Of a stretch of 64,000 bases of DNA, positions 14,469-44,306 are shown in pieces (position 1 is the first letter of the stretch; the number at the start of each line of letters is the position of its first letter). A model generated the notes under the pieces. That model ran no database searches. It had not been told where the DNA came from and worked only from the letters and a program-made list of their open reading frames with translations. The DNA lies in IMG/VR virus record IMGVR_UViG_3300019776_000324, positions 1 through 64,000 of that record; one strand, given 5' to 3'. Made by a program: the position numbers and the translations under genes.

Positions 14469-14471
14469 CGG

Positions 14472-21749: not shown

Positions 21750-21767
21750 ACATAATTCTGCTATAAT
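21739..21767 (+). promoter_or_regulatory. Sigma70-type promoter (probable leaderless mRNA)
   Basis: TTGTAA-17bp-TATAAT; ATG is 6 nt downstream. Confidence 0.6.
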
Positions 21768-21773: not shown

Positions 21774-22124
21774 ATGTTCAAGGCCATAAACGAATTGCAT
21801 CCGAGAAATCGTTCTGCTGAAGCAGACAAACTGTTCAAAGCACCAGAGTGGCGACTTGTTGACGATAAAGCTGTTAAGTTTTCGGATGTAATGGTTCATT
21901 CGTTCAACATGGGCGATGTAGAAGATCCAGATCTATATGCTGCACAACCCATTATGGAATGGCAGAACAGCGAAGCAGGACAATGGGTTATAGAACATGC
22001 TGTGGAGAAACCCTTCTGGCATCGTGTGTTGAGTCCTTACACTTATGGATGGACATATTATATTGTAGCTCGACTTGCTGAGCAAGATCAAACATACTGG
22101 ACACTTAAATGGCAAAAATCTTAG
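21774..22124 (+). CDS. Distant FxL[RK]W-family protein
   Basis: 'GDVEDPDLYAAQPI...EQDQTYWTLKWQKS'. Confidence 0.7.
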   Translation: MFKAINELHPRNRSAEADKLFKAPEWRLVDDKAVKFSDVMVHSFNMGDVEDPDLYAAQPIMEWQNSEAGQWVIEHAVEKPFWHRVLSPYTYGWTYYIVARLAEQDQTYWTLKWQKS

Positions 22125-23077
22125 TAACAGGCGGCCTAGGCTTTATTGGCCATAATGTTGTTGCCCTGTTAGAACAGCAAGGACATGCAGTTGTTGTAGT
22201 TGATAACTTGACTGACTATGGCATTATACCTGCACAAGAACTTGCTTGGTTGGTTGAACACCGCCGTAGAAAAATCAAAACACAACATATCTACAAGGAT
22301 GATATTGCTTGGTTAAACATCAGCAGAATCATTCAAGAGCATGAGATAGATACAGTCATACACTTGGCCAGCTTTCCCAGACAAAAAGTAGTCAATAACA
22401 ATCCGCAATGGGGCAGTCGTACCATGAGCGAGGGCCTGCTTAACTTGTTAGAAGCCAGTACCAGCAACAGTGTACGCAAGTTTGTATATGTTAGCAGCAG
22501 TATGGTCTATGGTAACTTCAAGGACAAATATTCAGACGGCGTAGATGAAAATCATGCTTGTAATCCCCTAGGGCAATACGGTATTATGAAGCTGGCAGGA
22601 GAATGGTTGGTCAAAGACTATGCTCGCCGTACTGGTATTGCTTATACTGTTATACGCCCTAGTGCTGTGTATGGACCCTTGGATGTAGAAGATCGTGTGG
22701 TCAGCAAGTTCTTGTTAACAGCCATGCGTGGTGGAGAAATACAAGTCAACGGCGATAAGGAAAGTTTAGACTTTACCTATGTAGACGATGCCGCAGATGG
22801 TATTGTGAGTGCTAGTATAAGCAACGACACAGACAACATGACATATAACATTACTCGTGGGTCTAGTCGTACCTTATTAGAAGCTGCAGAACTAGCTGTG
22901 CGTATAGTAGGCACAGGAACTATCCGTGTTAATCCAGCAGACAATAACTTTCCCAGTCGCGGTCAGTTAAATACGACTAGAGCATATCAAGACTTTGGAT
23001 ACATGCCTGCAACTGATATAGAACAAGGATTTGAGGAATACTATGCCTGGCTTAAAGATTCCATTTACCGGACTTAA
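22109..23077 (+). CDS. NAD-dependent nucleotide-sugar epimerase/dehydratase (extended SDR)
   Basis: TGGLGFIG, 'SSSMVYG', YxxxK 'YGIMK' and 'DFTYVDD'. Confidence 0.9.
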   Translation: MAKILVTGGLGFIGHNVVALLEQQGHAVVVVDNLTDYGIIPAQELAWLVEHRRRKIKTQHIYKDDIAWLNISRIIQEHEIDTVIHLASFPRQKVVNNNPQWGSRTMSEGLLNLLEASTSNSVRKFVYVSSSMVYGNFKDKYSDGVDENHACNPLGQYGIMKLAGEWLVKDYARRTGIAYTVIRPSAVYGPLDVEDRVVSKFLLTAMRGGEIQVNGDKESLDFTYVDDAADGIVSASISNDTDNMTYNITRGSSRTLLEAAELAVRIVGTGTIRVNPADNNFPSRGQLNTTRAYQDFGYMPATDIEQGFEEYYAWLKDSIYRT

Positions 23078-24122
23078 AAAGCAGTATAACAATCTGCGTA
23101 CAGAGATCTTAGATGTCACTGATGAAGTGTTAAGGTCAGGACAACTCATGGCTGGCAATTATACCGCAGAGTTTGAAAATTGGCTGGCTCATCGCAATCA
23201 CAGCAAATACGCTATAACATGTCACTCAGGCAGTCAAGCCCTAGAGATAATTGCCGAATACTATCGTACACAAACTAGTACTCGCCCACCCAGAGTAGTT
23301 GTACCATCAATGACTTATGTGGCCACTGCTAATGCATTTATACGAGCAGGTTGGGAAGTATGGATCGCAGACACTGACAAGTACGGTTTACTAGACAACA
23401 AGAAGCATGTGCCTGTGGATCTAAGTGTACAAGCAACTGTGCTGGTTGGCCTGTATGGTGCGGCTGTTAATGCTGATCGCTTTTGGGGTACGGACCTAGT
23501 TATAGAAGATGGTGCACAACACTGGTTGGCAAACAATTCAAATCGTGTGGGCAATGCTTGTGCTATCAGCTTTGACCCTATGAAGAACTTGAATGCTTAT
23601 GGCAACGGTGGTGCTGTAGTAACTGACGATATAGACTTGTTGGAGTTTGCTAGAGAGTGGACCAACAATGGCAAGCCCACGCACACAAACATAGGCACTA
23701 ACAGTAGAATGAGTGAGATAGAGTGTGCGCAGATGATGGTTAAAACACAGCACATTGATTCATGGCAAGCTCGTCGTGAAAACATATCCAAGTACTGGAT
23801 GGGCCGATTAAAGAACACAGGTATTAGAAGTTTAATTGATGCACACAATGTTGAAACACACTCGTATCACAAGTTTGTTATTGATGTGGACAATAGAGAT
23901 ATCCTTGCTCGTAACTTGGATATCAAAGGCATTGAAACTAGAGTACACTACAAGCAACCGCTACATGAACTGCCAGCTTACAGTAATTGCACTGGTCCTG
24001 ACATGTTAAGTGTTGCCAGTGCGTTGTCACGCAGAGTATTAAGTTTACCTATCTATCCAGAACTAACTGATCTGGAAGTAGAATATATTATTGATCAGGT
24101 ATTAGATTCCGCTTTATCATAG
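23043..24122 (+). CDS. DegT/DnrJ/EryC1/StrS PLP-dependent sugar aminotransferase
   Basis: 'TYVATANA', 'IEDGAQ', PLP-lysine motif 'SFDPMKNLNAYGNGG' and 'LSLPIYP'. Confidence 0.9.
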   Translation: MPGLKIPFTGLKKQYNNLRTEILDVTDEVLRSGQLMAGNYTAEFENWLAHRNHSKYAITCHSGSQALEIIAEYYRTQTSTRPPRVVVPSMTYVATANAFIRAGWEVWIADTDKYGLLDNKKHVPVDLSVQATVLVGLYGAAVNADRFWGTDLVIEDGAQHWLANNSNRVGNACAISFDPMKNLNAYGNGGAVVTDDIDLLEFAREWTNNGKPTHTNIGTNSRMSEIECAQMMVKTQHIDSWQARRENISKYWMGRLKNTGIRSLIDAHNVETHSYHKFVIDVDNRDILARNLDIKGIETRVHYKQPLHELPAYSNCTGPDMLSVASALSRRVLSLPIYPELTDLEVEYIIDQVLDSALS

Positions 24123-26484
24123 CATAAGTGGCCAACCACGCCCAGTCGTAGCTTTTCCGCAATTCAGCAAAATCCCCTGCCACAGCATCGTAGTATTCGA
24201 CAGCATCTTGTGCTCCGTAGATACTGTACTGCCCATATGGCTGACCCATGGCCACTGTTAACCATTTGTTTAGTCTATATTGACTTTCTACATCTGTGCT
24301 GTCTCGCAATTTGATACACTCACGGAAGGCTGTACGCCAAGCCGACCATTTACTGTGCGCATATTCTGCTGTGCCTGAACGAATAGGTACTACTTCGTGC
24401 GCACTGTCTAAGGTAAAGTCCAGGCCAACTCCAGGATTGTTTAGTACCAACTGCTTGTTATAAGCAATCAAGGCTTGATGCCCGTACTCTAGTCCATTGA
24501 TAGGATTGAATGCGTGGAAGATATAGTGCTTGGGTTCTTGTAGTCGATCAGGTTGCCACGACCAGTCAAACTGTGTATCAACACGCAACTTGGCAAACAC
24601 AGCAAAGAACCAAGGAGTAGTGCTTAACTCAGCGGCAGCTTGATAAGCGGCAACACGACCGTTGACTCCACTACTGCGTTCTATACGCTGACTGGTAAAC
24701 ATGTGACACTGCTTAAGGATGTTCCAGTTGGTTTCAGCATTGGGTTCACCGTTGTCAATAAACACTATGTCCAACGGTTCATCCTTGAGCATGTGACGCT
24801 GACTACGATCTATATTGGCGTAATCATATAGCTGTGTCTTTATGTAAGGAACTGCCACCTTGGGTACTATAACTGTGCTAGCGCCTGAACTTAGCGGAAC
24901 AATGGTCTTGGTCTTTTCTCTCCATAATGGCACAGCAGGAGGCGGTATTACTTGTGCTCCGTTAGTGGTATACACCGCCAAGGGTCCCGTAAAGTCCAGG
25001 GTCTTGACAGCTTCCACATGCGTATCGTAGTTGTGTTGTATAACTGGTAAGGCTCTGCGTGGTACATCCTTGTCCATGTAATTGAGATCATACCAATCTA
25101 ACAACTGTAGCTTGTCTGCACGATGCTTGAATGTAGGTACATGCATAAAGAAAGTATCACCGAACTTCATGCCATCGCTAGGGAATACATGTAGCATGGT
25201 AGCTTGCCAGACTTCAGGATGCCAAGTAAAGTCAAAGTCAGTGTAGTCACAGATACTGCTACAGATCCATACAAACTCATGTTCGCAGGTATTTGCTATG
25301 CGCTTTAAGGTATCCAAGTAGTTGTCAAAGTAGCGCACAGTCTTGGTAGTATTGGCGATTTGACCTGCATTACCATCCATGTGATCTATTTCATATATAG
25401 CAGTGGCAACACGGCCTGTCTTAATGCGAATTTGATCTATGTATTTTACATCCGTGGCCCCAGCTACATGATACTGTGGACCACCTGTGCGTTGATGTTG
25501 TGTACCAAATTGATATTGATAAGGTTGTTCTGTAGCATCTGGATGCCAGGTAAAATCAAAGCTGTCTGTATCAACATTATCAGGTACTGTCCATGCATTA
25601 TCTATGGCAGTTTTAACAGCTCTGGGTGCAGTGATATACTTTACTTCTTCAGCGCCGGTGACAACATAACTAGGGCCGCCAGTCTTTTGCCACTGTGTAC
25701 CAAACTGATAAATCATAGGCGGATCTCCAGGATCAGGCCGCCAACTGTAATCAAATGTGTCAGCATCTATAGTATCAGGAGTCACCCAATTATCTACGCA
25801 AGCTGCCAGTTCAGCTCTGGGATAAGGCATGTACTTGCGCTCACTAGCACCGGGCGCATGATACTCTACAGTGGCCATTTTATTAGCAGGCCACCATTGG
25901 TTGCCAAACACATATATGTAAGGAGGATCTCCTGGATCAGGTACCCACGAATAGTCAAACTTGCAGTCAATGAGTGTGTGCCAATGATTAGTGTGTTGTT
26001 CGTGTAACTGTGCCCTGGGTGCAGTCATGTATTTGCGTTCTGTAGCACCAGGTGCGTGATATTCCACTGTGGGCATGATTGTAGCCGGATACCATTGATT
26101 ACCAAACACATATATGTAAGGCGGGTCAAATGGATGCGGTTGCCAGGTATAGTCAAAGCTACATGAAGAATAATTAACTACATAATTGTCACGATTTTCC
26201 TGTGTGGGCAACACTTGTTCATGAAACTTGTAGTTGATTTCACCTGACTTGGGTACTAGATATGTGCCAGAAAATTCGTGATGCTGACTGGGCCAAGCAT
26301 GTGTGTATTCAGCTTGCCAAGGCACAGGTTCAAATAAAAAGTCAAAGCCGGTATAATCAGTTAAATAGTTTACCCACCAGAAATACCTAGTACTGCTTAA
26401 TTCCTGCGCATGTTGAATATCTCGAGCTGCTCGCTCATGCGGAAATAAGTTAGGCTTTGCTCCAGAATAAAAAATATCAAACAT
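24088..26484 (-). CDS. Repeat-containing protein with C-terminal glycosyltransferase-like (GT-A) domain
   Basis: Four tandem 'FD[YF][ST]W.P...' units; the C-terminal domain aligns by eye with the 41321-42247 protein. Confidence 0.65.
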   Translation of the reverse strand: MFDIFYSGAKPNLFPHERAARDIQHAQELSSTRYFWWVNYLTDYTGFDFLFEPVPWQAEYTHAWPSQHHEFSGTYLVPKSGEINYKFHEQVLPTQENRDNYVVNYSSCSFDYTWQPHPFDPPYIYVFGNQWYPATIMPTVEYHAPGATERKYMTAPRAQLHEQHTNHWHTLIDCKFDYSWVPDPGDPPYIYVFGNQWWPANKMATVEYHAPGASERKYMPYPRAELAACVDNWVTPDTIDADTFDYSWRPDPGDPPMIYQFGTQWQKTGGPSYVVTGAEEVKYITAPRAVKTAIDNAWTVPDNVDTDSFDFTWHPDATEQPYQYQFGTQHQRTGGPQYHVAGATDVKYIDQIRIKTGRVATAIYEIDHMDGNAGQIANTTKTVRYFDNYLDTLKRIANTCEHEFVWICSSICDYTDFDFTWHPEVWQATMLHVFPSDGMKFGDTFFMHVPTFKHRADKLQLLDWYDLNYMDKDVPRRALPVIQHNYDTHVEAVKTLDFTGPLAVYTTNGAQVIPPPAVPLWREKTKTIVPLSSGASTVIVPKVAVPYIKTQLYDYANIDRSQRHMLKDEPLDIVFIDNGEPNAETNWNILKQCHMFTSQRIERSSGVNGRVAAYQAAAELSTTPWFFAVFAKLRVDTQFDWSWQPDRLQEPKHYIFHAFNPINGLEYGHQALIAYNKQLVLNNPGVGLDFTLDSAHEVVPIRSGTAEYAHSKWSAWRTAFRECIKLRDSTDVESQYRLNKWLTVAMGQPYGQYSIYGAQDAVEYYDAVAGDFAELRKSYDWAWLATYAMIKRNLIPDQ

Positions 26485-27568
26485 GATTAGAATAGACGAA
26501 ATTTACAACAATACTTTTTGGCCTTGGTTTGCTAAAAATAGACCCGGCACCAGAGTGTTTTTTTGTGACCCTTTTGGGCATACTGATCGTGATCATTTAT
26601 TTAATCTTGGCACGGATGACATGGTAGAAAACGACTATGTGTATTTGCATGATCAAGAACCTGTTCATTTAGACCTGCACCAACCCTTGTTTGACGATGT
26701 TATCCGACGAAACGAAGATATCTGGGCCAAACCCGCAGGACATATTGTAGTCAGCGAACGCGGTGAATTTGTTGAAGAACTCAGCAGACAATACGGATGG
26801 ACCACACACTATTACTTCTTTCACGGCTGGGCTTGTCAGGACTGGTTCCGCGGCTACGATAAAACATTCCTTATTCCCAGAGCTAGAGATCGTAGCCCTA
26901 CTAGGACTTTTATGAGTCCCAATCGTATTGTAGCAGGCAAGCGTGATCATCGTGTGTTGTTTCTTTATAATGTGTTTAAGCATGGGCTAGAGTCAAATCA
27001 TATATCAGCACCCAGAACTTGTCAGTACGAAGGTGTAGATATTAGTAGTATAGCACAAAAGTATCAACATGTATACCAGGATATTACTCAAGTGTTTGAT
27101 CAAGCTGAATTACCCAGATTATTTGAGGGAGAAGAGCAACAGGAAATGACCAGTTGTTGGTTAAGCAACTTCACAGAAGCCCAAGATAGTTTAGTATATG
27201 TGCCTACTGAAACTGTGTACTTTGGGCGCAGACAGCACATAACCGAAAAGACATTTAAAGCAATAGCATTAGAAATGCCCTTTGTTCTAGTAGCACCCGC
27301 AGGCAGTTTGGCGTATATGCGTGAATACGGATTTAAGACTTTTGATACTGTATTTGACGAAAGCTACGATACCGAAACCAACGATGTTCGTAGAATAGAA
27401 CGGGTAACCAAACTATTAAAAGAATTAGATAGTTTAAGTTTAAAAGAAAGACAGCAAATACATCGTGCATGTTTACCCATAGTAGAACACAATTTTAATC
27501 ATTTCTATTCAGGCGGACTTACTGAAGTATTATGGGCAGAACTCAGGGCCATGTTAAATGAGTTTTAA
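26483..27568 (+). CDS. Glycosyltransferase-like protein (ET..TEKTFK..PF family)
   Basis: 'PTETVYF...ITEKTFKAIALEMPF...GFKTF...DESYD' resembles the GT10/GT-B donor-binding motif. Confidence 0.55.
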   Translation: MIRIDEIYNNTFWPWFAKNRPGTRVFFCDPFGHTDRDHLFNLGTDDMVENDYVYLHDQEPVHLDLHQPLFDDVIRRNEDIWAKPAGHIVVSERGEFVEELSRQYGWTTHYYFFHGWACQDWFRGYDKTFLIPRARDRSPTRTFMSPNRIVAGKRDHRVLFLYNVFKHGLESNHISAPRTCQYEGVDISSIAQKYQHVYQDITQVFDQAELPRLFEGEEQQEMTSCWLSNFTEAQDSLVYVPTETVYFGRRQHITEKTFKAIALEMPFVLVAPAGSLAYMREYGFKTFDTVFDESYDTETNDVRRIERVTKLLKELDSLSLKERQQIHRACLPIVEHNFNHFYSGGLTEVLWAELRAMLNEF

Positions 27569-28706
27569 CTTTGTTTGCGATCGTATAGTCAAGGACAAAG
27601 CATATCCAGCCTTAGCTCAACATCAAGCAGAACCTTATACACAGCAGTGGCGCGAATTTGTGCAGCATTGGCCCAATACAGTGCCTTGTGAGCTACACGA
27701 GCACTGTTCAACACACGGTTATCCATATACCTTAAGCACAGACACAGGTGACTATTACTGTATAGGCTTGGGCTTCTTTAATTTTGATACAGATTATATT
27801 GCGCTAATTCCTGAAAAGATTCGAAAAGAATCCTGCACTATTTTATTCTATTATCATGAAGGCGATAATCCAGCAAACATTAAAAAAAGACTAGATCATT
27901 TATGTGATCAACATGGTGTGAGTAGAGATCTTTATCGATTCATTTCGGGTAATACTGCCGCAGACAAAATACCTCAATTCGCATGGTTCCCTGATCACGA
28001 GCTATTATACTGGCATCGCAACCGTAGTGTACTGCCTGCTAGTGTACACTTGAACCCTAGACCCTATGACTTTACCTTGTTAAGCCGTACACACAAGTGG
28101 TGGCGGGCTACTGTGGTCACAGACCTACATCGTTCAGGGCTATTAGACTCAAGTCAGTGGAGTTATAATACTGTAGACATAGGTGATCAGCCCGAGGACA
28201 ACCCAATTGAAATAGACAGTTTAAATATTAGAGATCATGTTGAGGCTTTTTTAGCAGGAGCGCCATATAGCTGTGATAGCTTGACAGCCGAAGAACACAA
28301 TGATCACCATCGTACTGAATATCAGCACTACCAGGCCAGTTACTTTAATATCATACTAGAAACTCATTTTGATGCTGACGGCAGCGGTGGAGCCTTTTTA
28401 ACAGAAAAGACTTTTAAACCCATCAAACACGGACAACCGTTTGTTGTAGTGGGCGCACCAGGTACATTAGCAGCATTAAGAACCCTGGGCTATCGTACAT
28501 TTGATTCAGTATTAGATAACACATACGATACTATAACAGATAATACTCAACGCTGGTTGGCAGTTCGATCCGTAATTGAACGAATTAAATCCAATCCTGC
28601 GCATTACTTTAAACTGTGTTTAAATGATATTCTACACAACCAACAATTATTTGCCGCTAGCAAATACAACCGCTTAAATAGCTTACTTGAAAGATTACAA
28701 AAATGA
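27551..28706 (+). CDS. Glycosyltransferase-like protein (ET..TEKTFK..PF family); ORF 27558-28706
   Basis: 'ILETHF...LTEKTFKPIKHGQPF...GYRTFD'. Confidence 0.55.
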
Positions 28707-29722
28707 TTAATAGTTATACATCCTGGCAACCACTTGAAGAAGTCATTGTAGGTCGTGCATATAGTCCCGACTATTTTGACTTTATTGACAACCCACAAGT
28801 GCGAGCACAACTACAGCAAATTCTAGCTGAAACAGAAGAAGATTTAAACAACTTACAAAAGACCATTGAAACTTATGGTGCCCGTGTACGCAGACCCAAT
28901 TTGCCCAGTAAAGATCAATTTCAATGGTTCCAAACAGAAGGCGGTGGCGCTCCACTTCCTCCTTTAACTCCTAGAGATTGGCAGATCAGTATGGGCGATA
29001 AGTTGTTGCGTGTACTAGCTATGCCAGAGTTAGATGAAATATGTGCTGACTATGCAGATCAAGTTGTTAATCCACATAAAAGTGCTTGGGATCCAGACTG
29101 TATATTAAATCAAGCCAGTGCTAGTTGTATAGTGCGTGTAGGTGAAGATGTGTTCTTTGATAATTCAGACTTCCTGCGTCCAGAACAAACACAATGGATT
29201 GTGGACAACTGTTTAGACAGTCGTTATAGAATACACGAAGCTATTACAGACGGACACGGCGATGCTGTATTTGCTATCCTAAAGCCCGGAGTTATATTGT
29301 CAAGCAAGCACGATGTTAATTTAGATCTAGCAGGCGACTTTCCAGGTTGGGAAGTATTAAAGATTTGGGATAGTAGTATTTGGGCTGCTATGGAAGTGGG
29401 CAAATTTAAATATGAACAAAGTCCCGGCGCATGGTATGTACAAGGACAAACACCCACTGCTGAATTTACTGCTTTTGTGGACACCTATTTAAATAAATGG
29501 ACTGGCTTTGTGGCTGAAACAGTGTTTGATGTCAACTGTTTAGTGTTGGATGAAAGTAATGTTATCTTTAGTGCTTACAATAAAGAAGTATTTGATTTCT
29601 GTCACAAGCATCGAATCAATCCTATTATTAGCGAATTGCGTCATAGTTATTTCTGGGACGGCGGTATTAGTTGCTGTACACAAGACTTAACTAGACGCGG
29701 TGGCTTAGAGCGTTATCTTTAA
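28703..29722 (+). CDS. Amidinotransferase (glycine/inosamine-phosphate amidinotransferase family)
   Basis: 'NSYTSWQPLEEVIVG', 'PRD', 'HGD' and a C-terminal catalytic Cys in 'DGGISCCTQDLTR'. Confidence 0.85.
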   Translation: MINSYTSWQPLEEVIVGRAYSPDYFDFIDNPQVRAQLQQILAETEEDLNNLQKTIETYGARVRRPNLPSKDQFQWFQTEGGGAPLPPLTPRDWQISMGDKLLRVLAMPELDEICADYADQVVNPHKSAWDPDCILNQASASCIVRVGEDVFFDNSDFLRPEQTQWIVDNCLDSRYRIHEAITDGHGDAVFAILKPGVILSSKHDVNLDLAGDFPGWEVLKIWDSSIWAAMEVGKFKYEQSPGAWYVQGQTPTAEFTAFVDTYLNKWTGFVAETVFDVNCLVLDESNVIFSAYNKEVFDFCHKHRINPIISELRHSYFWDGGISCCTQDLTRRGGLERYL

Positions 29723-36852: not shown

Positions 36853-38180
36853 AATGTATTGTACCAGTCTGCTAGTTGTGGGAATGTTTTGGTAAAGTTC
36901 TTGCCACGGCGTTGATCGTATTGAGTGTAGAACTGTTTAAAATCATTCAACAACTTGGGCATGTCAAATGCTTCCGAATGCGGAGTTTTAACCACATCCA
37001 AGTAATCAATTAACCGTTGCATGTGATTGATTTCGTGCTCGTGTAACAGTGGACTAGTTCTGTTAAGATCTAACCATGCCTGTAAACTATCTTTGTACTG
37101 TGTTCTCAGTGTGTCTGGAAGCACTAATGCACTTTGAAAACTTGGAAAGCGCAGGATGTTTAGTGTAAAACTAACACGCTCACGCCCATAACAAGTCTTG
37201 AGATGGTTAATAGAATTCAGCAGTTTAGGTAAGGTTTCTAAACATAAGGCGTTGATAGTGGCCATACAATGTACAGCACGAATATCGTCTGAATCCAACA
37301 AGCGTTGTACATTGCGCAACCAAGCTGAATAATCCAGGCCGTCGCGCACATACTCTGCTTGTTCAGCCGTGGCTTCCTGGCTGGTGTATATGTCTACTTC
37401 TAGTCCATCAATGCTTGATAACAAGCGATCTAAGTCTACTTCTGGACCCAGGTTACTGTTAATGGCTAGTCGTGTTTGACTTTTGCCCTTGTTCTCTTTG
37501 AACCAGTCGAGTAGCTTCCAAGTGTCGCCCGACATAAGCGGCTCCCCGCCCGTGATGCGTAACTCTTGGAGTGTTTTATGCAGGTCTGACTCCCACCACT
37601 TAAAGAACGCTTCAACATAGGGATTCGTTTCGCCAAACTTGTATAGTTGACTGCTAGGGTGATCATGAGTAAAGTGGTTACGCCCATCAGACACCAAGGA
37701 CTCATAGGGACCGTTGGATCGTATGTCTTTAACCCATGTGCTACTGAAAGCAGGGTTACAATAGCTACAAGCGAATTGGCAAGTGCGATCGAATGCGATT
37801 TCAAGTGTGCGAAGATTGACATCTTCTTGGTGTGGTTTTGTGTATGCTTCATCTAGGGCCTCTATAGGGTAAATTTTACTTTTGTACACACGATCGCTAA
37901 TAGCATCGCGACCCATGTCTTCAATCTTCCAGCAGTATTCACAGCCTCTAGGACGCTGGCCGATCTGCATGTTTAGTCGATCTATCTTCTTTTCCACTGT
38001 GTTGTGTATAGCACTGGGATTGGTTTTGATCAATTCCTCATCAATTTTGTGTGCTGGAGGATGATGACAACTTGTAGTCTGTCCTGATCCTAGCCATATA
38101 GTAGCGTTGTACCATTTGGCAGCGCAGAAGCTGGCACTTTTTGTGTCCAGCACTTGTTGTTTAAATTCCAAATCGTTCAT
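36849..38180 (-). CDS. Radical SAM protein (CxAKW/SCxH subtype)
   Basis: CQFACSYC and TGGEPL; N-terminal CAAKW...SCHH...CEYCW. Confidence 0.9.
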   Translation of the reverse strand: MNDLEFKQQVLDTKSASFCAAKWYNATIWLGSGQTTSCHHPPAHKIDEELIKTNPSAIHNTVEKKIDRLNMQIGQRPRGCEYCWKIEDMGRDAISDRVYKSKIYPIEALDEAYTKPHQEDVNLRTLEIAFDRTCQFACSYCNPAFSSTWVKDIRSNGPYESLVSDGRNHFTHDHPSSQLYKFGETNPYVEAFFKWWESDLHKTLQELRITGGEPLMSGDTWKLLDWFKENKGKSQTRLAINSNLGPEVDLDRLLSSIDGLEVDIYTSQEATAEQAEYVRDGLDYSAWLRNVQRLLDSDDIRAVHCMATINALCLETLPKLLNSINHLKTCYGRERVSFTLNILRFPSFQSALVLPDTLRTQYKDSLQAWLDLNRTSPLLHEHEINHMQRLIDYLDVVKTPHSEAFDMPKLLNDFKQFYTQYDQRRGKNFTKTFPQLADWYNTL

Positions 38181-39291
38181 GTATGTATTGTTCAAAGTGT
38201 TTGGGGAATTCTTGGCGAATGCTAGGGCGAAGTTCTAGCATCAATTGTTGATTGTATTTACATGTTTCGTCTGCGGCAGTTATAAAAGCTGGCAAGTCCT
38301 GCCGACAAAGGTCCTCTACTACTTGCGCTATTCGCTCAAGTCTAGTTTGATTATCCTCAATAAGATCAAAACTTTCATCAATCAAGTGTCCAAATGTGCG
38401 AAATCCTAGGTTGTGTAAGTCTCGATAGTAGCCATAGTTACTAGCCACAATAAATGGGTGACCCATAGCCACTGGTTTCCATATCTTTTCTGTTCTAAAA
38501 GAATGCGGATAGGTAAACACTGTTTCAGTAACTAGACTAAAGTAAGTGTCAAGGTACGGCAAGGGTGCTAGATATATTTCGCCCCACTCTCGTTTGAACA
38601 AATGATTTTTAGCATAGAATCCATCTGTTGAATCTTTAGCTGGTACTGCTACTGCTTGGGATTGATATCTATCAACTTCGTATTTTGGAGGCAAATAGTG
38701 TATGGGATTCTCTGTCAGTTTAATATCTAGTAGTTCGGTGTTGCCCACAACATCATCCAAGTTTGTCCAAAGGCATTGATCAATCAAACCAGACTCTTTA
38801 AAACTATCTAATAGATATTTTCTATGAGCACGGAATCTACCATTTAAAAACAAAAACTTATATGGACGGTCTGTGCTTTTCTTTTCTTGGTACTCAGCAA
38901 TTGCCTGTATATTTTCTTCGTAGTCGTGTACTAATGTTAGAAAATGTTCATGATACAAGTGCGGTATTTCTGTGGGCAGGTGCCCGCCAACAATAAGTCC
39001 TACAGGAAGATTATGGGTCAACATGTATTCAATACCAAAAGTACGATACATCCATAACATACTGTAAGATCCTTCAGCAGGGTTACATAGTATTGCAGTT
39101 ATGGTATTGCTTGAAACTAATTCTTGTATGCGGTTTTTATGCTCAGCAAACTGTTGCCGACCAAATATGTATATTGCACCTGGAATGATTTTGCACTCAT
39201 TTAAATCCCAAAACTCTTCGTCTGCATAGGGTTTAAGTAGATTTTGTATTTCACAAAAGCTGTTTAATACTACTTTACGATTGCCGAGCAT
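38161..39291 (-). CDS. Glycosyltransferase-like protein (ET..TEKxxK..PF family)
   Basis: 'VTETVF...RTEKIWKPVAMGHPF...GFRTF...DESFD'. Confidence 0.55.
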   Translation of the reverse strand: MLGNRKVVLNSFCEIQNLLKPYADEEFWDLNECKIIPGAIYIFGRQQFAEHKNRIQELVSSNTITAILCNPAEGSYSMLWMYRTFGIEYMLTHNLPVGLIVGGHLPTEIPHLYHEHFLTLVHDYEENIQAIAEYQEKKSTDRPYKFLFLNGRFRAHRKYLLDSFKESGLIDQCLWTNLDDVVGNTELLDIKLTENPIHYLPPKYEVDRYQSQAVAVPAKDSTDGFYAKNHLFKREWGEIYLAPLPYLDTYFSLVTETVFTYPHSFRTEKIWKPVAMGHPFIVASNYGYYRDLHNLGFRTFGHLIDESFDLIEDNQTRLERIAQVVEDLCRQDLPAFITAADETCKYNQQLMLELRPSIRQEFPKHFEQYIHERFGI

Positions 39292-40687
39292 AGTACTCAC
39301 ACTCCTTCCACCATGCTGACATTTCTGGAAATACAGTTAAAAAGTCTGTGCCGTGGCGACGGTCTGCTTCGCTGAAGAACTTAAAGAAGTCTGCTTTACA
39401 TTGATTAATGTATGCAGGATCTAGCTTTTGTCCGTCGCGCATCCACGCAATATCTCTATCCAATCTAGCAATCTCATAGTCCTTGAATCCTTGAAAGCGT
39501 GTGGCGTCTGTTTCAATTTGACGGATCATCCAGGCCCACAAGTGTTCTAGTTGCTCTACATAGCTTTCTGGAAGTATTTGTAAACTTTGCCAGGCAGGTT
39601 GTCTAAGCACAGGAGTATCAAACCATACACGCTGATAAGTTTTACTGTATATTTTTCTTAGACCCAGGATACCAGCAAACAAACTACTTAGGTTAGTCAC
39701 ACTTAGGTTATTCATAGTGACAATAAAAGTTATACTGTTATAACTAGGAACTTCAGTAAGGAATTGATTTACACGATCCCACAACAAATCAAAGTCAAGA
39801 CCGTGTCTGATGTACTCTGCTTGTGGTCCAAAGCTGTCCAAGCTGATGTACTGCATAAAGTGTTCCAAGTTGCCTTCTTGGCATAGTTGTTTACAATAGC
39901 CCAGGTACTTTTGCCAGGTCTTTTCGTCTACACTGAAGTTGCTGGTTACATTTAAGTGTAGATCTGGCTTGGGGTTGGCCAACACATAATCAAACACACG
40001 ATAGGTATTCTTGTCTAGCATGGGCTCGCCACCAGTCATGCGGAAGTGCTGTAGTTCTGGGTACAAGGTAGGCCACCAATCCCAAAACGCATCTACATAA
40101 GGATTATCATGGCTAACAGGGATAGGCTTATTACGACCGGTGAAATGGCTAGGATCGTTATGAGTAGTACTTGTAGGGTATCCGCCGTACTTGTCCACCT
40201 CAGCTTGCCAAGTGCTTGAAAATTGCGGACTGCAATAACTACAAGCCAAGTTACAAACATGATTGAAATTAACTTCCACATAGCTAGGTGTAACATCTTC
40301 ATCTCCGGTTGAATTCATTATACTATCAAAGTCTTTGGCGGCCCATGGTTCACCAGATCGATAGTGGCGGTCGCTTAACTTGTTGTTATCTTCCATAGCC
40401 CAGCAATAAGAGCATTCGCTAGGGCGTTCTTGCTTTAACATAATCTTACGCTGTTCTTTCTTATGCGGAGTATTATGTAGTGCTGACGAATTGTCTGCTA
40501 ATAGGCCAGCATCAATTGGGTGCAGGGGAGGATGATAACAACTGTTGTTGAGTCCGGTAGGCAAGTGTAGGCTAACTTGTTTCCATTTGGCCAAACACAT
40601 GCCGTGACCCAAGCGATCCTTCATCTCTTCTGCTGAGCTTAAGAACTTGCTTTTGTTATCTACTGATTCGTCGCCTTTGTTATTCAT
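39275..40687 (-). CDS. Radical SAM protein (CxAKW/SCxH subtype)
   Basis: CNLACSYC and TGGEPM; N-terminal CLAKW...SCYH...CSYCW. Confidence 0.9.
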   Translation of the reverse strand: MNNKGDESVDNKSKFLSSAEEMKDRLGHGMCLAKWKQVSLHLPTGLNNSCYHPPLHPIDAGLLADNSSALHNTPHKKEQRKIMLKQERPSECSYCWAMEDNNKLSDRHYRSGEPWAAKDFDSIMNSTGDEDVTPSYVEVNFNHVCNLACSYCSPQFSSTWQAEVDKYGGYPTSTTHNDPSHFTGRNKPIPVSHDNPYVDAFWDWWPTLYPELQHFRMTGGEPMLDKNTYRVFDYVLANPKPDLHLNVTSNFSVDEKTWQKYLGYCKQLCQEGNLEHFMQYISLDSFGPQAEYIRHGLDFDLLWDRVNQFLTEVPSYNSITFIVTMNNLSVTNLSSLFAGILGLRKIYSKTYQRVWFDTPVLRQPAWQSLQILPESYVEQLEHLWAWMIRQIETDATRFQGFKDYEIARLDRDIAWMRDGQKLDPAYINQCKADFFKFFSEADRRHGTDFLTVFPEMSAWWKECEYYARQS

Positions 40688-41321
40688 TGTGGAAATGCCC
40701 TTGAGAATATTGCCATGATCCTAGTTGTTCCTGTACATAATCCAAGTTTGAAAACATGTCAGATAAAGGAAAAGCAAATTGATTTTTAAAAATGTTTGTT
40801 TGAGTGTTAAAAGTTAAGTTCTCGTAACACAATACAAAGTCTGGTAAAAAATAATCATCTACCAGTTGTTCTAGTTTAAACTGATCAATATCTTGTTTGG
40901 TTGCTGTGATTTCTTTTTCTTTCACTCTTGTATTATTTGGGGTGTGATTATGCCAGCCGTGTAATCCTGTTGGATCCATAACTCTAAAGTATATCCAACT
41001 TGAAAATTGTTTTACTTTATCCATGCGCTTGATGTTGACAATTATGTTGCGTTGTTTAATTTGATCTACATCGATTGCCAGGGTCATTTTGGGAGTCAAC
41101 TGAACTAGTTGCGCTACTGTAAGTGTTGATGCTGAAGATAACTTGTTGATATCATCCCACGGATTATCACAATATCCTACCTTGCAAATTTCTTCTAAGT
41201 TTTTTGCACCACTGATTGCACAAAGTTCTGCAGATAGGGCATGAGTTCCGGATCGCGGAGCTCCTATAATTAAAATATTTTTCTGCTGTTGTTTAGCACA
41301 ATCAATAATAGTTTGATACAT
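40680..41321 (-). CDS. Sulfotransferase-like P-loop protein
   Basis: 'IIGAPRSGTHAL' (5'-PSB-like), 'KRMDKVKQFSSW' (3'-PB-like) and 'YENL'. Confidence 0.55.
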   Translation of the reverse strand: MYQTIIDCAKQQQKNILIIGAPRSGTHALSAELCAISGAKNLEEICKVGYCDNPWDDINKLSSASTLTVAQLVQLTPKMTLAIDVDQIKQRNIIVNIKRMDKVKQFSSWIYFRVMDPTGLHGWHNHTPNNTRVKEKEITATKQDIDQFKLEQLVDDYFLPDFVLCYENLTFNTQTNIFKNQFAFPLSDMFSNLDYVQEQLGSWQYSQGHFHNE

Positions 41322-42247
41322 TACCAACCTTCTTGGCTTCTAATAACATCCATTTCTCTGATCATAACTCCTTGGTTATGCCAGTTACTGCGATAATGCT
41401 GTTTAAAGAATTTACTTTCCGGCCCTAGTATATTGAGCATTGATAAATCTAATTGTGTAGCAAGATCTTCAGCTACTAGTCCAGCAACCATTTCGGGGTT
41501 TTTATCTTCTATAGTTGACCACAGTTCTTTTAGTGCATCAAAACTTTGTACTTGTTTGTAGTCCCATTCAGGAGTAATCATGGTCATGTAGGTGCCCATT
41601 CTTGCGCCAGCAATGGCCCAGATACCATGGTCAACATCGCGTCCTACATTGTGCCATATAGTTAAATGATCCAAGTTACGATGATGCACACGATTTTTAA
41701 ATTCTTGTAAGCTAGGGCGGGCACCTTTGTTTAGGCACATCTTAACACCTTCGCGGAAGCCAGCTCGCCATGCTTGGAACGCACTGGCATTAGGATATGT
41801 AGTACTGTAGCAATCGTGCATGGCAATGTAGTTAGGATAAAAACAAAACTCCACATCATTCTCTGCTGTGCCGTCTGTATTCTCGTGCGTTTTCATGTTG
41901 TAAACAAAATCCTTAGTCCAACAACTTAGTCCACCATTGCCATACATGAGTCCGTTGATGTGATTGCGAGCTCTCCAACGGAATACACAATCTTCATCGC
42001 GTTCTTGTAGGGTCAGTGTCAAGTTAAAAAACTTATCATCTGGAATGTTGTCGCCGTCAATTAACACAAAGCGATCTGTATTACTAGCATCTGCTGCTGC
42101 TTTATGTGCTGCATCCGATCCTTTAACACCATCTACACGAACAGCCCAAGGTACCATGTTTTTAATTTTAACCCAGGTATCTTCTTTGTTGGGTTCGTCG
42201 TAGCTTAGATAAACACAATCTAAATCTGCAATATCAATTTGTTTCAT
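41321..42247 (-). CDS. Glycosyltransferase-like protein (GT-A, DxD)
   Basis: 'YLSYDEPN', 'IDGDN' DxD, 'NGLMYGNGG' and 'AWRAGFREGVK'. Confidence 0.6.
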   Translation of the reverse strand: MKQIDIADLDCVYLSYDEPNKEDTWVKIKNMVPWAVRVDGVKGSDAAHKAAADASNTDRFVLIDGDNIPDDKFFNLTLTLQERDEDCVFRWRARNHINGLMYGNGGLSCWTKDFVYNMKTHENTDGTAENDVEFCFYPNYIAMHDCYSTTYPNASAFQAWRAGFREGVKMCLNKGARPSLQEFKNRVHHRNLDHLTIWHNVGRDVDHGIWAIAGARMGTYMTMITPEWDYKQVQSFDALKELWSTIEDKNPEMVAGLVAEDLATQLDLSMLNILGPESKFFKQHYRSNWHNQGVMIREMDVIRSQEGW

Positions 42248-42581
42248 TTCTTGTTTTGTTCCATTTTGTATGTGGTAGCGAGTTGTCAACTACAATACAA
42301 ACATCGTACGGGCTACATGCTGTGCCTGCGGTGCTGGGTTGTAGTTTTGTTATAGTTCTAATTGGTTTAATGTGGACCAGTTTATTGTTAATTACTTTGA
42401 CATTAAACGGCGCTAGAACATAAGTTTTTTGATCGACTTCTATATAATTACCTGGCAACTCCTCCATGCTATAGATAATAGGACTTCCGTCGTCATTGTA
42501 ATACAATCTGTAGAATATTGGCTTTGCTTCGGGCATAGCATATAAGATTGACCAGAATTCGTCTGGAGTCATTTCACTCAT
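42234..42581 (-). CDS. Hypothetical protein
   Basis: Coupled ORF; 'FYRLYYNDDGS'. Confidence 0.7.
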   Translation of the reverse strand: MSEMTPDEFWSILYAMPEAKPIFYRLYYNDDGSPIIYSMEELPGNYIEVDQKTYVLAPFNVKVINNKLVHIKPIRTITKLQPSTAGTACSPYDVCIVVDNSLPHTKWNKTRNETN

Positions 42582-42843
42582 CGTTGCTCTTGTTATCTGC
42601 TTTAAGTTGTGCGTCAGCTTTACGCTCTTGCATAGTTTTTTCTTTAAATGCCTTGCGTGGATTCATGCAAAAGATACAATTAGGATTACCACAACTAAAC
42701 ACGCTACACTTAAGATACTTGTGTGGTTGTGCTAAAATATGTTTCCATCCATATGCTTTAGCAACCTTCATTTTGTTTTTTACGACGCTTTCCTTTTGAT
42801 GAATGCGCTTGCTGTGTTTCTTTTTATCTTCATCTTTACTCAT
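42574..42843 (-). CDS. Small basic Cys-rich protein
   Basis: 'CGNPNCIFCMNPRK', a possible Zn site. Confidence 0.65.
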   Translation of the reverse strand: MSKDEDKKKHSKRIHQKESVVKNKMKVAKAYGWKHILAQPHKYLKCSVFSCGNPNCIFCMNPRKAFKEKTMQERKADAQLKADNKSNDE

Positions 42844-43561
42844 TTCGCCACTCCTTTATGTGATAGTGTACTAACCCTGACTGTGCCACAGTGTTAATTC
42901 TAAATGGATCGTTTTCCCATACTAGTTCTTTGGTCCAATCATCTCCTTGTATAGGATTGATATGGCGTTTCATATGTACAATCGTTGGTCCTAATCCTGC
43001 TGGCAATGTTACTTGTTCCGGGCCCATAATAACTGCTGCAACGGCATACACTACATCAGTAGTTGGACGCTCGTCTGGAAATTTTAACAGTGTTCGATAG
43101 GATTCCCACTGTTCAAATATATTTTTTACTAGATCGAAAAATTCTCTAGCAGTGTTGCTCAACCGCCAATAGGTAACCGCATTATAAACATCTGGTAAGT
43201 TGTTATTATCAAATATTTTTCTGTAATATCTTGATTCAGCAGGTTGATCATAAAATGTTCTAGCACCTTGACTAACCACAACATCTCTGCGCTCAAACAA
43301 TGTCCACCAGTGATCAATAGGGCTGGCACAGATCATGTCTGCTTCTAATTTAATAGTTTGTCTATACGGACTACACTGAAACATTTGCCAGTCGTTCGCG
43401 TATCCACCCAGATCTCCATATGGCAGTGCATCTTTATTAATAATAGTTATATCGGCTGCGGGATGAAAGTTAAGTATGCTTGCTCGTAATTGCTCAGCAC
43501 ACCTAATGTACTCATCTCCAAAGGCTGGAATAATATAACCGCGTTCAGCAAGGACTGGCAA
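42836..43561 (-). CDS. Nucleotide-diphospho-sugar transferase-like (GT8-like) protein
   Basis: 'SPYRQTIKLEAD', 'TTDV' and 'VHMK'. Confidence 0.6.
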   Translation of the reverse strand: MPVLAERGYIIPAFGDEYIRCAEQLRASILNFHPAADITIINKDALPYGDLGGYANDWQMFQCSPYRQTIKLEADMICASPIDHWWTLFERRDVVVSQGARTFYDQPAESRYYRKIFDNNNLPDVYNAVTYWRLSNTAREFFDLVKNIFEQWESYRTLLKFPDERPTTDVVYAVAAVIMGPEQVTLPAGLGPTIVHMKRHINPIQGDDWTKELVWENDPFRINTVAQSGLVHYHIKEWRNE

Positions 43562-44306
43562 CGATCTCTCCTAGTTGTTGTTTACCCATAGCGTGGAAGT
43601 CTTGCCGCAATTCAATCCAGCGTGGCTTATTTTCTGCATTTACAAAATCTACACGGTAACGATCTGTATCTAACTGTGTTAACTTATGCTCTGGAGTTAA
43701 ACTTGCTAACAGCCACGGAATACCTGCATGATCAATGGTATGCCCATTTACTATACCCAACGCAATACTTAACGCATGATCATTTCTATATGTTGGCTTT
43801 GAATTTTTATATAAAGCACAATAGTGATTCCAGTTATCGCGAATCATTTGCATTGAATCAAATATTAATTCTGCTTGCTTACTACGACGAAACATCATTA
43901 CCGTTGCCCACCACATAGGCATGCGATTGTCTCCAAAGTAATTTAATCCTTCAAAGTTATTACAACCAGTGACATCATAGGCCCAACGATGTGCTAGAAA
44001 GTCTTGATCGGCTTCTAATACTGACTTTAGCTGATCACTAGCTACAACATAGTCCGCATCTAATACTAATGTTCTATCCCACGGCGACAAACGATATGCA
44101 TCCATGCGATTAAGATTGTGCCAAGTAACTGTGCCTACATCGCTAAAGTATCTTGTGTTAGTACCTTCTGCGGTGTCTGTTACTTCTGTTACTATGTGCG
44201 TTGGTATGCCAAGGTGACGCTCAATGTTCTTTGCAGACCACTTAGCCATGGCAAGATAGTCAATCTGTTCATTGTTACGAGCAAAGATTAAAGCACCTGT
44301 GGTCAT
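43545..44306 (-). CDS. Nucleotide-diphospho-sugar transferase-like (GT8-like) protein
   Basis: 'SPWDRTLVLDADY' DxD, 'RNDHA' and 'HAMGK'. Confidence 0.65.
   Translation of the reverse strand: MTTGALIFARNNEQIDYLAMAKWSAKNIERHLGIPTHIVTEVTDTAEGTNTRYFSDVGTVTWHNLNRMDAYRLSPWDRTLVLDADYVVASDQLKSVLEADQDFLAHRWAYDVTGCNNFEGLNYFGDNRMPMWWATVMMFRRSKQAELIFDSMQMIRDNWNHYCALYKNSKPTYRNDHALSIALGIVNGHTIDHAGIPWLLASLTPEHKLTQLDTDRYRVDFVNAENKPRWIELRQDFHAMGKQQLGEIVASPC

Follow-up and report, generated by a model that had tools for sequence, protein, structure and literature searches.

A probable glycan assembly and tailoring cluster with five radical SAM enzymes beside the fibre genes of an uncultured jumbo phage

What would a bacteriophage do with about 23 tightly packed genes, many of them for sugar and group-transfer chemistry, lying next to the genes for its fibres? 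The question is raised by the first 64 kb of the JGI metagenome contig Ga0197937_1108542 (344,244 bp; IMG/VR UViG_3300019776_000324), a stretch which is referred to here as the window. An initial annotation of this DNA had described a packed enzyme cluster at 22109-44306, equipped for sugar modification, glycosyl transfer and group-transfer tailoring. Both the cluster and the gene set are borne out. The short-chain dehydrogenase/reductase (SDR), DegT aminotransferase, amidinotransferase, carbamoyltransferase and five radical S-adenosylmethionine (SAM) enzymes are securely identified, and the families found comprise SDR and DegT enzymes that modify sugar nucleotides, glycosyltransferases, and enzymes that place groups on hydroxyls or amines. 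We regard a glycan pathway, with both assembly and tailoring in the cytoplasm, as the likely function. The fuller reading, in which this assembly and tailoring module has the virion, and specifically its fibres, as acceptor, is held tentatively and with somewhat less than even confidence.

The packed block occupies 21.8-44.6 kb of the window, and most adjacent genes overlap by 1-25 nucleotides (nt). Its boundaries would best be extended to 21774 and 44605, which takes in two co-conserved small open reading frames (ORFs). The genes are listed below, with sizes in amino acids (aa) and the identifying evidence in brackets; NDP stands for nucleoside diphosphate, PLP for pyridoxal phosphate and 2OG for 2-oxoglutarate.

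21774-22124, plus strand: g116, small ORF of 116 aa heading the g116-SDR-DegT unit (promoter-like site upstream)
22109-23077, plus strand: extended SDR of the NDP-sugar epimerase/oxidoreductase type (Pfam Epimerase, 1.8e-42)
23031-24122, plus strand: PLP-dependent sugar aminotransferase of the DegT/PseC/WecE type (Pfam DegT, 3.5e-58)
24088-26484, minus strand: 798-aa repeat protein with a GT-A-like C-terminal domain (repeats; paralogy to 41321-42289)
26483-27568, plus strand: GT-B-like glycosyltransferase paralogue 1, 361 aa (alignment with its paralogues; fold through the family model)
27558-28706, plus strand: predicted GT-B glycosyltransferase paralogue 2, 382 aa (AlphaFold2 model and Foldseek)
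28703-29722, plus strand: amidinotransferase, 339 aa, accessory (profile match to solved structures)
29719-30264, minus strand: 2OG/Fe(II)-oxygenase-like protein, 181 aa, accessory (motif only)
30265-31773, minus strand: O-carbamoyltransferase of the NodU/CmcH/TobZ family (Pfam Carbam_trans_C and Carbam_trans_N)
31868-32902, minus strand: conserved 344-aa protein (invariably flanked by the radical SAM block and the carbamoyltransferase gene)
32883-34175, minus strand: N-terminal-twitch radical SAM 1, 430 aa (NF033640, 5e-85)
34175-35395, minus strand: N-terminal-twitch radical SAM 2, 406 aa (NF033640, 7e-98)
35392-36852, minus strand: N-terminal-twitch radical SAM 3, 486 aa (NF033640, 3e-122)
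36849-38195, minus strand: N-terminal-twitch radical SAM 4, 448 aa (NF033640, 9e-87)
38161-39300, minus strand: GT-B-like glycosyltransferase paralogue 3, 379 aa (alignment with its paralogues; family fold)
39275-40687, minus strand: N-terminal-twitch radical SAM 5, 470 aa (NF033640, 8e-91)
40680-41327, minus strand: sulfotransferase-like P-loop protein, 215 aa, accessory (weak Pfam matches and motifs)
41321-42289, minus strand: GT-A/GT2-like glycosyltransferase, 322 aa, core (D-G-D, AlphaFold2 model, Foldseek)
42234-42581, minus strand: small conserved ORF, 115 aa (in 23 relatives; no family match)
42574-42843, minus strand: small Lys/Cys-rich ORF, 89 aa (in a few relatives)
42836-43561, minus strand: putative nucleotide-sugar transferase GT241, 241 aa (paralogue of 43545-44306; phrog_1903)
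43545-44306, minus strand: putative nucleotide-sugar transferase GT253, 253 aa (invariant D-x-D)
44303-44605, minus strand: u100, 100 aa, first gene of its transcription unit (conserved in 49 loci; no family match)
44612-44654, minus strand: boundary element, a GC hairpin with a predicted sigma-70-type promoter (gap sequence, promoter scan)

An IMG/VR scan with one of the radical SAM proteins returned 60 loci, many of them on contigs of 317-354 kb, and 27 window proteins were then compared by tblastn with the 59 loci beyond the window's own contig, together with an analysis of gene layout. Whether the genes co-occur in relatives was the check that the initial annotation had proposed, and they do: about 55 of the 60 loci share gene content and gene order, so that the arrangement is not a matter of chance. 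The module belongs to a lineage of jumbo myoviruses with genomes of about 320-350 kb. Its fixed order begins fibre (425 aa), fibre (329 aa), u100, GT253, GT241, a variable slot of small ORFs, GT-A and a variable sulfotransferase-like slot, and continues radical SAM, a variable GT-B slot, four further radical SAM genes, the 344-aa protein and the carbamoyltransferase. The order is invariant over this whole stretch, fibre genes included; gene content varies on the far side of the carbamoyltransferase. The conserved core thus consists of u100, GT241 and GT253, the GT-A/GT2-like gene, the five radical SAM genes, the 344-aa protein and the O-carbamoyltransferase; around it lies a variable shell of three GT-B genes, amidinotransferase, 2OG-like and sulfotransferase-like genes, SDR and DegT, and the 798-aa repeat protein. 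Among the 59 loci the amidinotransferase is found in about 18 closer relatives and the 2OG-like and sulfotransferase-like genes in four each, while extra radical SAM copies, GT-B paralogues, the 798-aa protein and SDR/DegT occur in some loci but not all, the 798-aa protein being kept in most relatives. The earlier picture of an amidinated, oxidised and sulfated product therefore suits the variant carried by this phage but not the conserved core. In two relatives (L039 and L060) g116 accompanies SDR and DegT; it has no Pfam or NCBIfam match. The 344-aa protein, present in 54 loci with 64 invariant positions across 17 sequences, has no match in Pfam, NCBIfam, PHROG or PDB, and single-sequence searches of Pfam, NCBIfam and PHROG gave almost nothing for the unassigned ORFs of the cluster in general.

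A cultured phage, Ralstonia phage RsoM2USA (343.8 kb), carries a minimal module at the equivalent place. Downstream of its ORF361 and fibre-like ORFs lie homologues of GT253, GT241 and the GT-A gene, one N-terminal-twitch radical SAM gene and a second GT-A gene; the module adjoins fibre and giant structural genes, and the baseplate of RsoM2USA is only distantly related.

The five radical SAM proteins of the window all match NCBIfam NF033640 ('N_Twi_rSAM', twitch domain-containing radical SAM protein), with scores of 286, 328, 408, 292 and 305 bits against a curated cut-off of 170. In three of the five, Pfam places the SPASM/twitch match N-terminal of the radical SAM core (residues 8-83 and then Radical_SAM at 127-312 in protein 1, 9-77 and 120-279 in protein 2, 40-103 and 149-307 in protein 3). 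In an alignment of nine sequences, made up of the five window proteins and homologues from Vibrio phage K566 and RsoM2USA, C154, C158 and C161 of the CxxxCxxC motif are invariant, as are C40, C59, C100 and C103. With these invariant cysteines and an N-terminal twitch domain, the five proteins are predicted to be intact enzymes of permuted domain order, and not of the BtrN type. The initial likening to BtrN accordingly fell away, as the twitch domain of BtrN is C-terminal, the reverse order, and no BtrN model is among the NCBIfam matches. Each of the five genes is kept as a separate orthologue across about 55 loci (44-88% identity, CxxxCxxC intact), which would mean five distinct hydrogen-abstraction steps. 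Proteins 4 and 5 are 37% and 35% identical, respectively, to ORF349 of RsoM2USA. A literature search found no paper on N-terminal-twitch radical SAM enzymes or their chemistry.

Bacterial members of NF033640 share the permuted domain order, and all five proteins of the phage exceed the family threshold, but the bacterial proteins are single-copy, about 35% identical to those of the phage, and lie in natural-product or glycan contexts that lack the phage transferase families. These contexts are mixed, with ketosynthases, PhyH dioxygenases, a WelO5-type halogenase, other radical SAM/SPASM proteins, GT1/GT4 glycosyltransferases, a carbamoyltransferase, a Sulfotransfer_4 protein and SxtJ among the neighbours. 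In none of the 70 genuinely bacterial loci examined was any of the phage's three transferase families found, nor its 344-aa protein. Matches L064-L071, and probably L083, were discarded as bacterial context because they are phage contigs binned into metagenome-assembled genomes. They were labelled Porticoccaceae, Legionellales, Verrucomicrobia TMED56, Betaproteobacteria TMED41, Haliscomenobacter, Rickettsiales, Flavobacterium and Bacteriovoracaceae; most bear several phage-type radical SAM paralogues, and several add cluster and fibre genes. A host might be suggested by the two contigs labelled Haliscomenobacter (148 and 183 kb), unless these reflect mere co-abundance. Vibrio phage K566 (254 kb; L062, positions 161548-168284 of its record) has four N-terminal-twitch radical SAM genes away from its annotated fibre genes and without the transferase families of this cluster, so the family also travels in other phage contexts.

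The radical SAM enzymes might act on the side chains or backbone of a fibre or other virion protein, by cross-linking or epimerisation, in the way that SPASM/twitch maturases modify peptides, with sugars added separately by the transferases. Their secondary NCBIfam matches are weak and mostly to peptide-maturing SPASM enzymes, the cluster adjoins fibre genes, and other radical SAM/SPASM proteins are among the bacterial neighbours, all of which would suit such a role. However, the peptide-maturase matches reach 10-30 bits where the cut-offs are 300-850, further secondary matches are to enzymes acting on sugars or nucleotides (BlsE, MoaA, viperin), neither a recognition element of ribosomally synthesised and post-translationally modified peptides nor a precursor-peptide-like gene was found, and the radical SAM genes are interleaved with the transferases in a fixed order. 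We consider action on protein decidedly improbable, and take sugars as the preferred substrate.

Among the group-transfer enzymes, the carbamoyltransferase matches Carbam_trans_C at 1.4e-47 (161.8 bits, cut-off 27) and Carbam_trans_N at 1.4e-31 (110.6 bits, cut-off 24) and is 59-72% identical in most relatives. Against the NodU equivalog it scores 135 where 1000 is needed, so that it belongs to the family without being an orthologue of NodU. The amidinotransferase was missed by single-sequence Pfam and NCBIfam searches, and was found when a profile of 15 orthologues was compared with PDB (human AGAT 3.2e-18, HsvA 3.5e-14, StrB1 3.6e-13, SxtG 7.8e-13). The match runs in three stretches (2-102, 140-202, 275-339). 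Cys324 aligns with the catalytic Cys, and His185 with the His of the P-H-I-D-A stretch of AGAT, which we take to be the catalytic one; both are invariant, and the catalytic Asp falls just beyond the aligned stretch.

Two further tailoring calls of the initial annotation, '2OG oxygenase' and 'sulfotransferase-like', stand at the level of conserved motifs, with no family match at threshold and none in PDB. In the 181-aa 2OG-like protein H99-x-D101...H161...R173 is invariant in 36 sequences; it has no Pfam or PDB match, and no Pfam match is precomputed for its 120 homologues among the matches listed, so that its identity is a motif-level call. The 215-aa protein matches Pfam Sulfotransfer_1 and Sulfotransfer_3 below threshold (E 0.04-0.05) and has no PDB match by profile search. 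Its stretches G-x-x-R-S-G-x-H and R-x-x-K-x-x-Q-x-x-S-W are invariant in five sequences, and resemble the two loops (5'-PSB and 3'-PB) that bind 3'-phosphoadenosine-5'-phosphosulfate. Of the sugar-nucleotide enzymes, the SDR has its best NCBIfam matches far under their cut-offs and contains SSSMVYG and YGIMK, and the T-D-E triad of 4,6-dehydratases is absent from it. The DegT aminotransferase matches PseC (2e-38) and dTDP-4-amino-4,6-dideoxygalactose transaminase (8e-32), in both cases under the NCBIfam cut-off.

These families invite comparison with aminoglycoside and saxitoxin biosynthesis, a parallel that had been drawn initially. At the superfamily level it holds, as DegT, the amidinotransferase (StrB1), a carbamoyltransferase of the TobZ family and twitch-type radical SAM enzymes are all shared with aminoglycoside pathways. 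The phage cluster differs in having no cyclitol-forming enzyme, in its N-terminal twitch, in the lack of any BtrN or KanJ model match, in its seven transferases and in its viral structural setting. No cyclitol, 2-deoxy-scyllo-inosose or SxtA-like enzyme was detected by Pfam or NCBIfam, although seven ORFs are without a family and the absence is thus not absolute. With the defining scaffold enzymes not found and radical SAM enzymes of another type, the cluster belongs to neither pathway. A related proposal is that it makes a diffusible small molecule, an aminosugar or guanidino natural product borne by the phage and acting on the host or on competitors. The trio of amidino-, carbamoyl- and sulfotransferases does recall saxitoxin tailoring, with SxtG as well as StrB1 among the profile matches, and the bacterial NF033640 genes lie near ketosynthases and the other natural-product genes named above. 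Yet cluster searches detected no polyketide or non-ribosomal peptide module, and no gene for export or self-resistance; the amidino-, sulfo- and 2OG-type genes belong to the accessory set and not to the core, seven transferases point to a polymer, and the position of the cluster inside the structural region is conserved. With neither scaffold enzyme nor exporter found, a diffusible metabolite ranks as the least likely product, and we hold it to be highly improbable.

The seven glycosyltransferase-like proteins counted in the initial annotation are real and fall into three families without a Pfam model; two of these are assigned to GT-B and GT-A/GT2-like folds by structural modelling, and the third, a pair, has neither a Pfam nor a PDB match. 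A profile search against solved structures gave no credible match for any of the three. The GT-B family (26483-27568, 27558-28706 and 38161-39300) aligns mutually over an invariant T-E-K...K...P-F block and, in a profile search of 1.84 billion representatives, comprises 12,302 clusters at 50% identity. Many members are proteins of 700-980 aa with two or three matched stretches. Among 50 distant members no Pfam domain was found, save in one that is fused to a UDP-glucose/GDP-mannose dehydrogenase, a fusion that fits a sugar-nucleotide donor. The family has no match to Pfam or PDB at the level of sequence, but the AlphaFold2 model of 27558-28706 (predicted local distance difference test, pLDDT, 96.8; predicted template modelling score, pTM, 0.93) recovers only GT-B proteins in its top 22 Foldseek matches to PDB at E<=1e-3 (template modelling, TM, score 0.4-0.57), among them SenB (2.5e-5), TreT, PglA, T4 beta-glucosyltransferase, SdgB, BshA and glycogen synthase. 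The modelling indicates a GT-B fold for this protein and, through the family, for the other two.

The 41321-42289 protein is paralogous to the C-terminal third of the 798-aa protein (25% identity in alignment). It has an invariant D78-G79-D80 and a weak, under-threshold Pfam match to Glyco_tranf_2_3 (0.0048). Its AlphaFold2 model (pLDDT 77) matches hyaluronan synthase (3.7e-5), SunS/ThuS, RmlT and ppGalNAcT in PDB at E 4e-5 to 1e-2, with low TM scores of 0.25-0.3 because the alignment is confined to the N-terminal half. In a library of viral structures its best matches are two proteins of uncultured phages (800-1076 aa), and it also matches the mycobacteriophage Che8 glycosyltransferase (E 5e-3, 9% identity, a likeness of fold only) and GT2/GT25 enzymes of giant viruses. 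On this model it appears to be a GT-A/GT2-like glycosyltransferase. The family has more than 8000 homologue clusters in metagenomes, and among GenBank phages is found only in RsoM2USA. The 798-aa protein carries four tandem repeats of about 66 aa with the form FD[YF][ST]WxP...Y.FG.Q, and two further copies of the motif FD[YFW][ST]WxP beyond them; its GT-A-like C-terminal copy lacks the DGD (DxD) motif. The GT241 and GT253 families are homologous to each other by hhalign (99.6%). D83 and D85 of GT253 are invariant, a DxD following a beta-strand-like stretch. No Pfam match was obtained for any of 36 members, and none in PDB, and they are putatively nucleotide-sugar transferases, with GT8-like enzymes as the candidate type.

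Could these transferases act on DNA? In a hypermodification pathway they would glycosylate a modified base, with the other enzymes decorating the sugar, as protection from nucleases. Radical SAM and PLP enzymes are known in thymidine hypermodification pathways. The structural matches of the GT-B protein include T4 beta-glucosyltransferase (rank 8, E 1.4e-4), and the weak ones of the GT-A protein a TET-associated glycosyltransferase; the promoter at the head of the cluster is of an early type (see below), and a gene for the thymidylate synthase ThyX (21087-21749, plus strand, 6.7e-43) adjoins the SDR/DegT unit. However, the T4 match is no better than many other GT-B matches, and ThyX, the sole candidate in the 64 kb, is not co-conserved with the cluster in the 59 relatives (tblastn). 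In the cluster and its surroundings no base hydroxymethylase, kinase or pyrophosphorylase was seen, the 64 kb inspected being part of a 344-kb genome, and a 2OG-like gene present in only four loci cannot supply a core base oxidation. We know of no DNA glycan whose needs are not far exceeded by seven transferases, and an oligosaccharide is a better fit to that number than base modification. DNA hypermodification is thus improbable, and assembly of an oligosaccharide on another macromolecule is the reading that we follow.

The choice of acceptor then turns on membranes, promoters and neighbours. None of the 27 window proteins has a transmembrane segment (no 19-residue window reaches a hydropathy of 1.6), from which it follows that the chemistry of the cluster would be cytoplasmic, and that the cluster alone cannot build and export a lipid-linked polymer. 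A membrane-embedded initiating transferase, flippase or polymerase, as in a Wzx/Wzy- or ABC-type locus, is likewise missing from these 27 proteins.

On transcription, the 71-nt gap between the Thr-rich fibre gene (329 aa) and u100 holds a GC hairpin (44641-44654), followed directly on the minus strand by TTTACC (44635-44640), a 17-nt spacer and TATAAT (44612-44617), whose end lies 6 nt ahead of the start codon. The window contains a promoter class TTGAC(C/A/T)-N17-TATAAT, whose exact TTGACC form is observed five times against 0.05 expected; allowing one mismatch raises the number to 10, where 1.9 would be expected, and the spacer is 17 nt in every one. Nine are on the plus strand at 3.6-18.5 kb (3664-18499), several of them directly ahead of an HNH gene and of genes in an array of small ORFs, and the tenth heads the cluster. 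None of the sites in the window lies ahead of the baseplate, giant or fibre genes, and generic promoter and terminator counts over the region are not above chance. The g116-SDR-DegT unit is headed by a similar site, TTGTAA-17-TATAAT (21739-21767). A hairpin, with differing complementary stems, and -35/-10-like boxes are also usual in relatives, in the gap ahead of the u100 homologue; a strict pattern of hairpin and promoter is found in 16 of 41 distinct sequences, and most others are near matches. With a hairpin after the fibre gene and a predicted sigma-70-type promoter of its own, we conclude that the cluster forms a separate transcription unit and is not the tail end of a fibre operon. It would probably be read by host sigma-70 polymerase, like the early-looking genes, with the timing judged from promoter class. 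A further element, GGTAAATA, is common to the gaps upstream of two fibre genes (46979-46986 and 47757-47764, minus strand); these are its sole two copies in the window, and it may be a late-promoter element, although its count is not above chance. Within the cluster, the start codons of the divergent genes 24088-26484 (minus) and 26483-27568 (plus) overlap at 26482-26485, which leaves no room for promoters between them.

This arrangement bears on a further explanation, host-envelope remodelling, by which the soluble enzymes would work from the cytoplasmic face on lipid-linked precursors of the host's O-antigen, core or capsule and so alter the cell surface, for instance to block superinfection. 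The promoter class at the head of the cluster, unlike the gaps ahead of the fibre genes, looks early, and a variable tailoring shell resembles serotype variation. Transferases that build the lipopolysaccharide (LPS) core and the O-antigen are as a rule soluble and of GT-A or GT-B type. Infection may also be long, the latent period of RsoM2USA being 270 min. For T4-like cyano- and pelagimyophages, cassettes of fibre-adjacent glycosyltransferase and radical SAM genes have been interpreted as serving to modify the host O-antigen (PMC7029224). On the other hand, the cluster has no initiating phosphoglycosyl transferase, flippase, polymerase, ligase or membrane protein, and its three transferase families and 344-aa protein are absent from the 70 bacterial loci. 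The core is also kept across what are probably very different hosts (Ralstonia; freshwater and soil metagenomes), which is hard to square with host-specific lipid-linked acceptors. Remodelling of the host envelope seems to us rather unlikely.

A virion acceptor draws instead on the neighbouring genes, which on the minus strand run in the order baseplate wedge gene, giant ORF, three fibre-like ORFs and cluster:

61925-63970, minus strand: 'baseplate wedge subunit' by PHROG match (7e-114)
47769-61925, minus strand: giant ORF of 4718 aa
47007-47615, minus strand: fibre-like ORF, one of three fibre-like neighbours of the cluster
45682-46959, minus strand: neighbouring fibre protein, 425 aa (Pfam Peptidase_G2, 0.0015; PHROG tail fibre/structural matches)
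44677-45666, minus strand: Thr-rich fibre-like protein, 329 aa, a neighbour and not an enzyme, candidate acceptor (directly upstream of the cluster)

The baseplate wedge protein is about 30% identical to its counterparts in Agrobacterium phage Atu_ph07, Escherichia phage 121Q and their relatives, and the phage is, as judged from its sequence, an uncultured jumbo myovirus. Near-identical DNA was not found among 50,697 GenBank phage records. The weak Pfam match of the 425-aa protein is to an intramolecular-chaperone domain. The 329-aa protein is 24% Thr (Ser and Thr together 33%, Gly 12%, Ala 12%) and nearly chargeless (K 1%, E 0%, D 2%, R 2%), its gene adjoins the cluster in relatives too, and it is a possible substrate for O-glycosylation. 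The giant ORF, between the baseplate wedge and fibre genes, contains 1% Lys, 0% His and 0% Cys; its counterpart in RsoM2USA, ORF361 (2541 aa), has been identified as a virion protein by mass spectrometry (PMC8504454).

Several points favour the virion as acceptor. The adjacency to fibre genes is conserved out to RsoM2USA, which strengthens the case, and the neighbouring fibre protein has the Ser/Thr-rich, almost chargeless composition just described. In the structural comparisons, the modelled GT-A protein has among its neighbours enzymes that act on peptides or proteins (SunS/ThuS, ppGalNAcT), as well as the Che8 enzyme, which would suit a protein acceptor. By analogy, the glycosylation of giant-virus fibrils with SDR- and DegT-type enzymes offers a precedent, and the variable tailoring genes beyond the carbamoyltransferase resemble strain-variable glycan loci.

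Other points weigh against it. Conserved fibre adjacency supported the virion acceptor proposed initially, but the hairpin and the early-looking promoter separate the cluster from the fibre genes, so that it is not the continuation of a fibre operon and the case is weakened. If the pelagimyophage cassettes are rightly read as O-antigen modification, a place beside the fibre genes need not imply a joint function. The missing membrane proteins are weak evidence, since lipid-linked glycans of the host can be reached by soluble transferases from the inner face of the membrane. The mixed bacterial neighbourhoods of NF033640 are uninformative as to its substrate, and the GT241/GT253, 2OG-like and sulfotransferase-like identities are putative. 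Finally, the SDR lacks the dehydratase triad, which leaves DegT without an evident source of keto sugar.

If the virion reading is right, the pathway would take up NDP-sugars of the host as starting material, from one of which SDR and DegT would make an amino sugar. The transferases of GT-A and GT-B type would assemble a short oligosaccharide on a macromolecular acceptor, and each of the five radical SAM enzymes would carry out one hydrogen-abstraction step on its sugars, such as an epimerisation, oxidation or dehydration. Carbamoyl, amidino (turning an amine into a guanidino group) and possibly sulfate groups would be added afterwards. The acceptor would be the phage's own fibre proteins, in the first place the 24%-Thr protein encoded upstream, and the result a strain-variable glycan coat on the virion. 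In its most specific form, a fibre-coating oligosaccharide that is remodelled by five radical SAM steps and carbamoylated, with guanidino and sulfate groups in some strains, throughout a widespread lineage, the proposal is possible but doubtful. If it were true, five-step radical SAM sugar chemistry would be new to any protein-linked glycan, carried out by hitherto uncharacterised enzymes, those of NF033640 and of three glycosyltransferase families.

Virus-encoded glycosylation is established in giant eukaryotic viruses and in a few mycobacteriophages. The present cluster is most like the giant-virus systems in its workings, and stands further from those of the mycobacteriophages and from the host recognition cluster of marine myophages. 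The clusters behind the fibril glycans of Megavirinae (PMC10117803, PMC9614988) also hold SDR- and DegT-type sugar enzymes and several glycosyltransferases of the virus's own, in grouped genes that vary between clades, and their glycan sits on virion fibres. They belong to eukaryotic viruses, however, and lack the five radical SAM enzymes, the carbamoyltransferase and the amidinotransferase found here; the three transferase families of the phage, moreover, have no Pfam model. In mycobacteriophages of the Che8 type, GT-A genes next to structural genes have been linked to capsid or tail glycosylation (PMC11256854). Those phages carry two or three transferases and no tailoring or radical SAM enzymes, and the present cluster differs further in having an early-type promoter to itself. 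A fibre-adjacent variable region with glycosyltransferases, LPS-type sugar genes and radical SAM cassettes is also described for pelagi- and cyanomyophages, as their host recognition cluster (PMC7029224), but those phages are T4-like, of about 150-250 kb, and the region is variable in content, whereas here a 15-kb core is fixed in order across about 55 contigs.

A literature search found no paper on a comparable cluster in jumbo phages. What is new here is the scale of about 23 genes, the five-fold radical SAM core from an uncharacterised family, the three transferase families without models, and carbamoyl and amidino tailoring in a phage. As a case of bacteriophage glycosylation the cluster would far exceed the others in elaboration, and it supplies abundant conserved context for assigning chemistry to NF033640 and to the three transferase families. 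A fixed core with a variable shell suggests selection on a structure that is surface-exposed or recognised, which bears on how large environmental phages deal with hosts, defences and grazers. As the cultured relative RsoM2USA carries the minimal module, the question of the acceptor can be answered there.

Some features of the window lie away from the cluster. An Rfam scan of the whole window gave no match. ARAGORN calls a proline transfer RNA (anticodon AGG, 92 nt) at 521-612 on the plus strand, within the ORF 132-1103 (phrog_20720); as Rfam does not report it at gathering score, it may be false. Stop-codon recoding was considered for the ORF-poor stretch at 5-15.5 kb and rejected, since every frame there holds all three stop codons. 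Between 5526 and 15530 on the plus strand lie about 40 small ORFs of 59-138 aa, abutting or overlapping on one strand with high GC skew, which looks like an early host-takeover gene array. An SPFH/Band 7 protein (18796-19593, plus strand, 5.8e-14) is encoded a short way upstream of the cluster.

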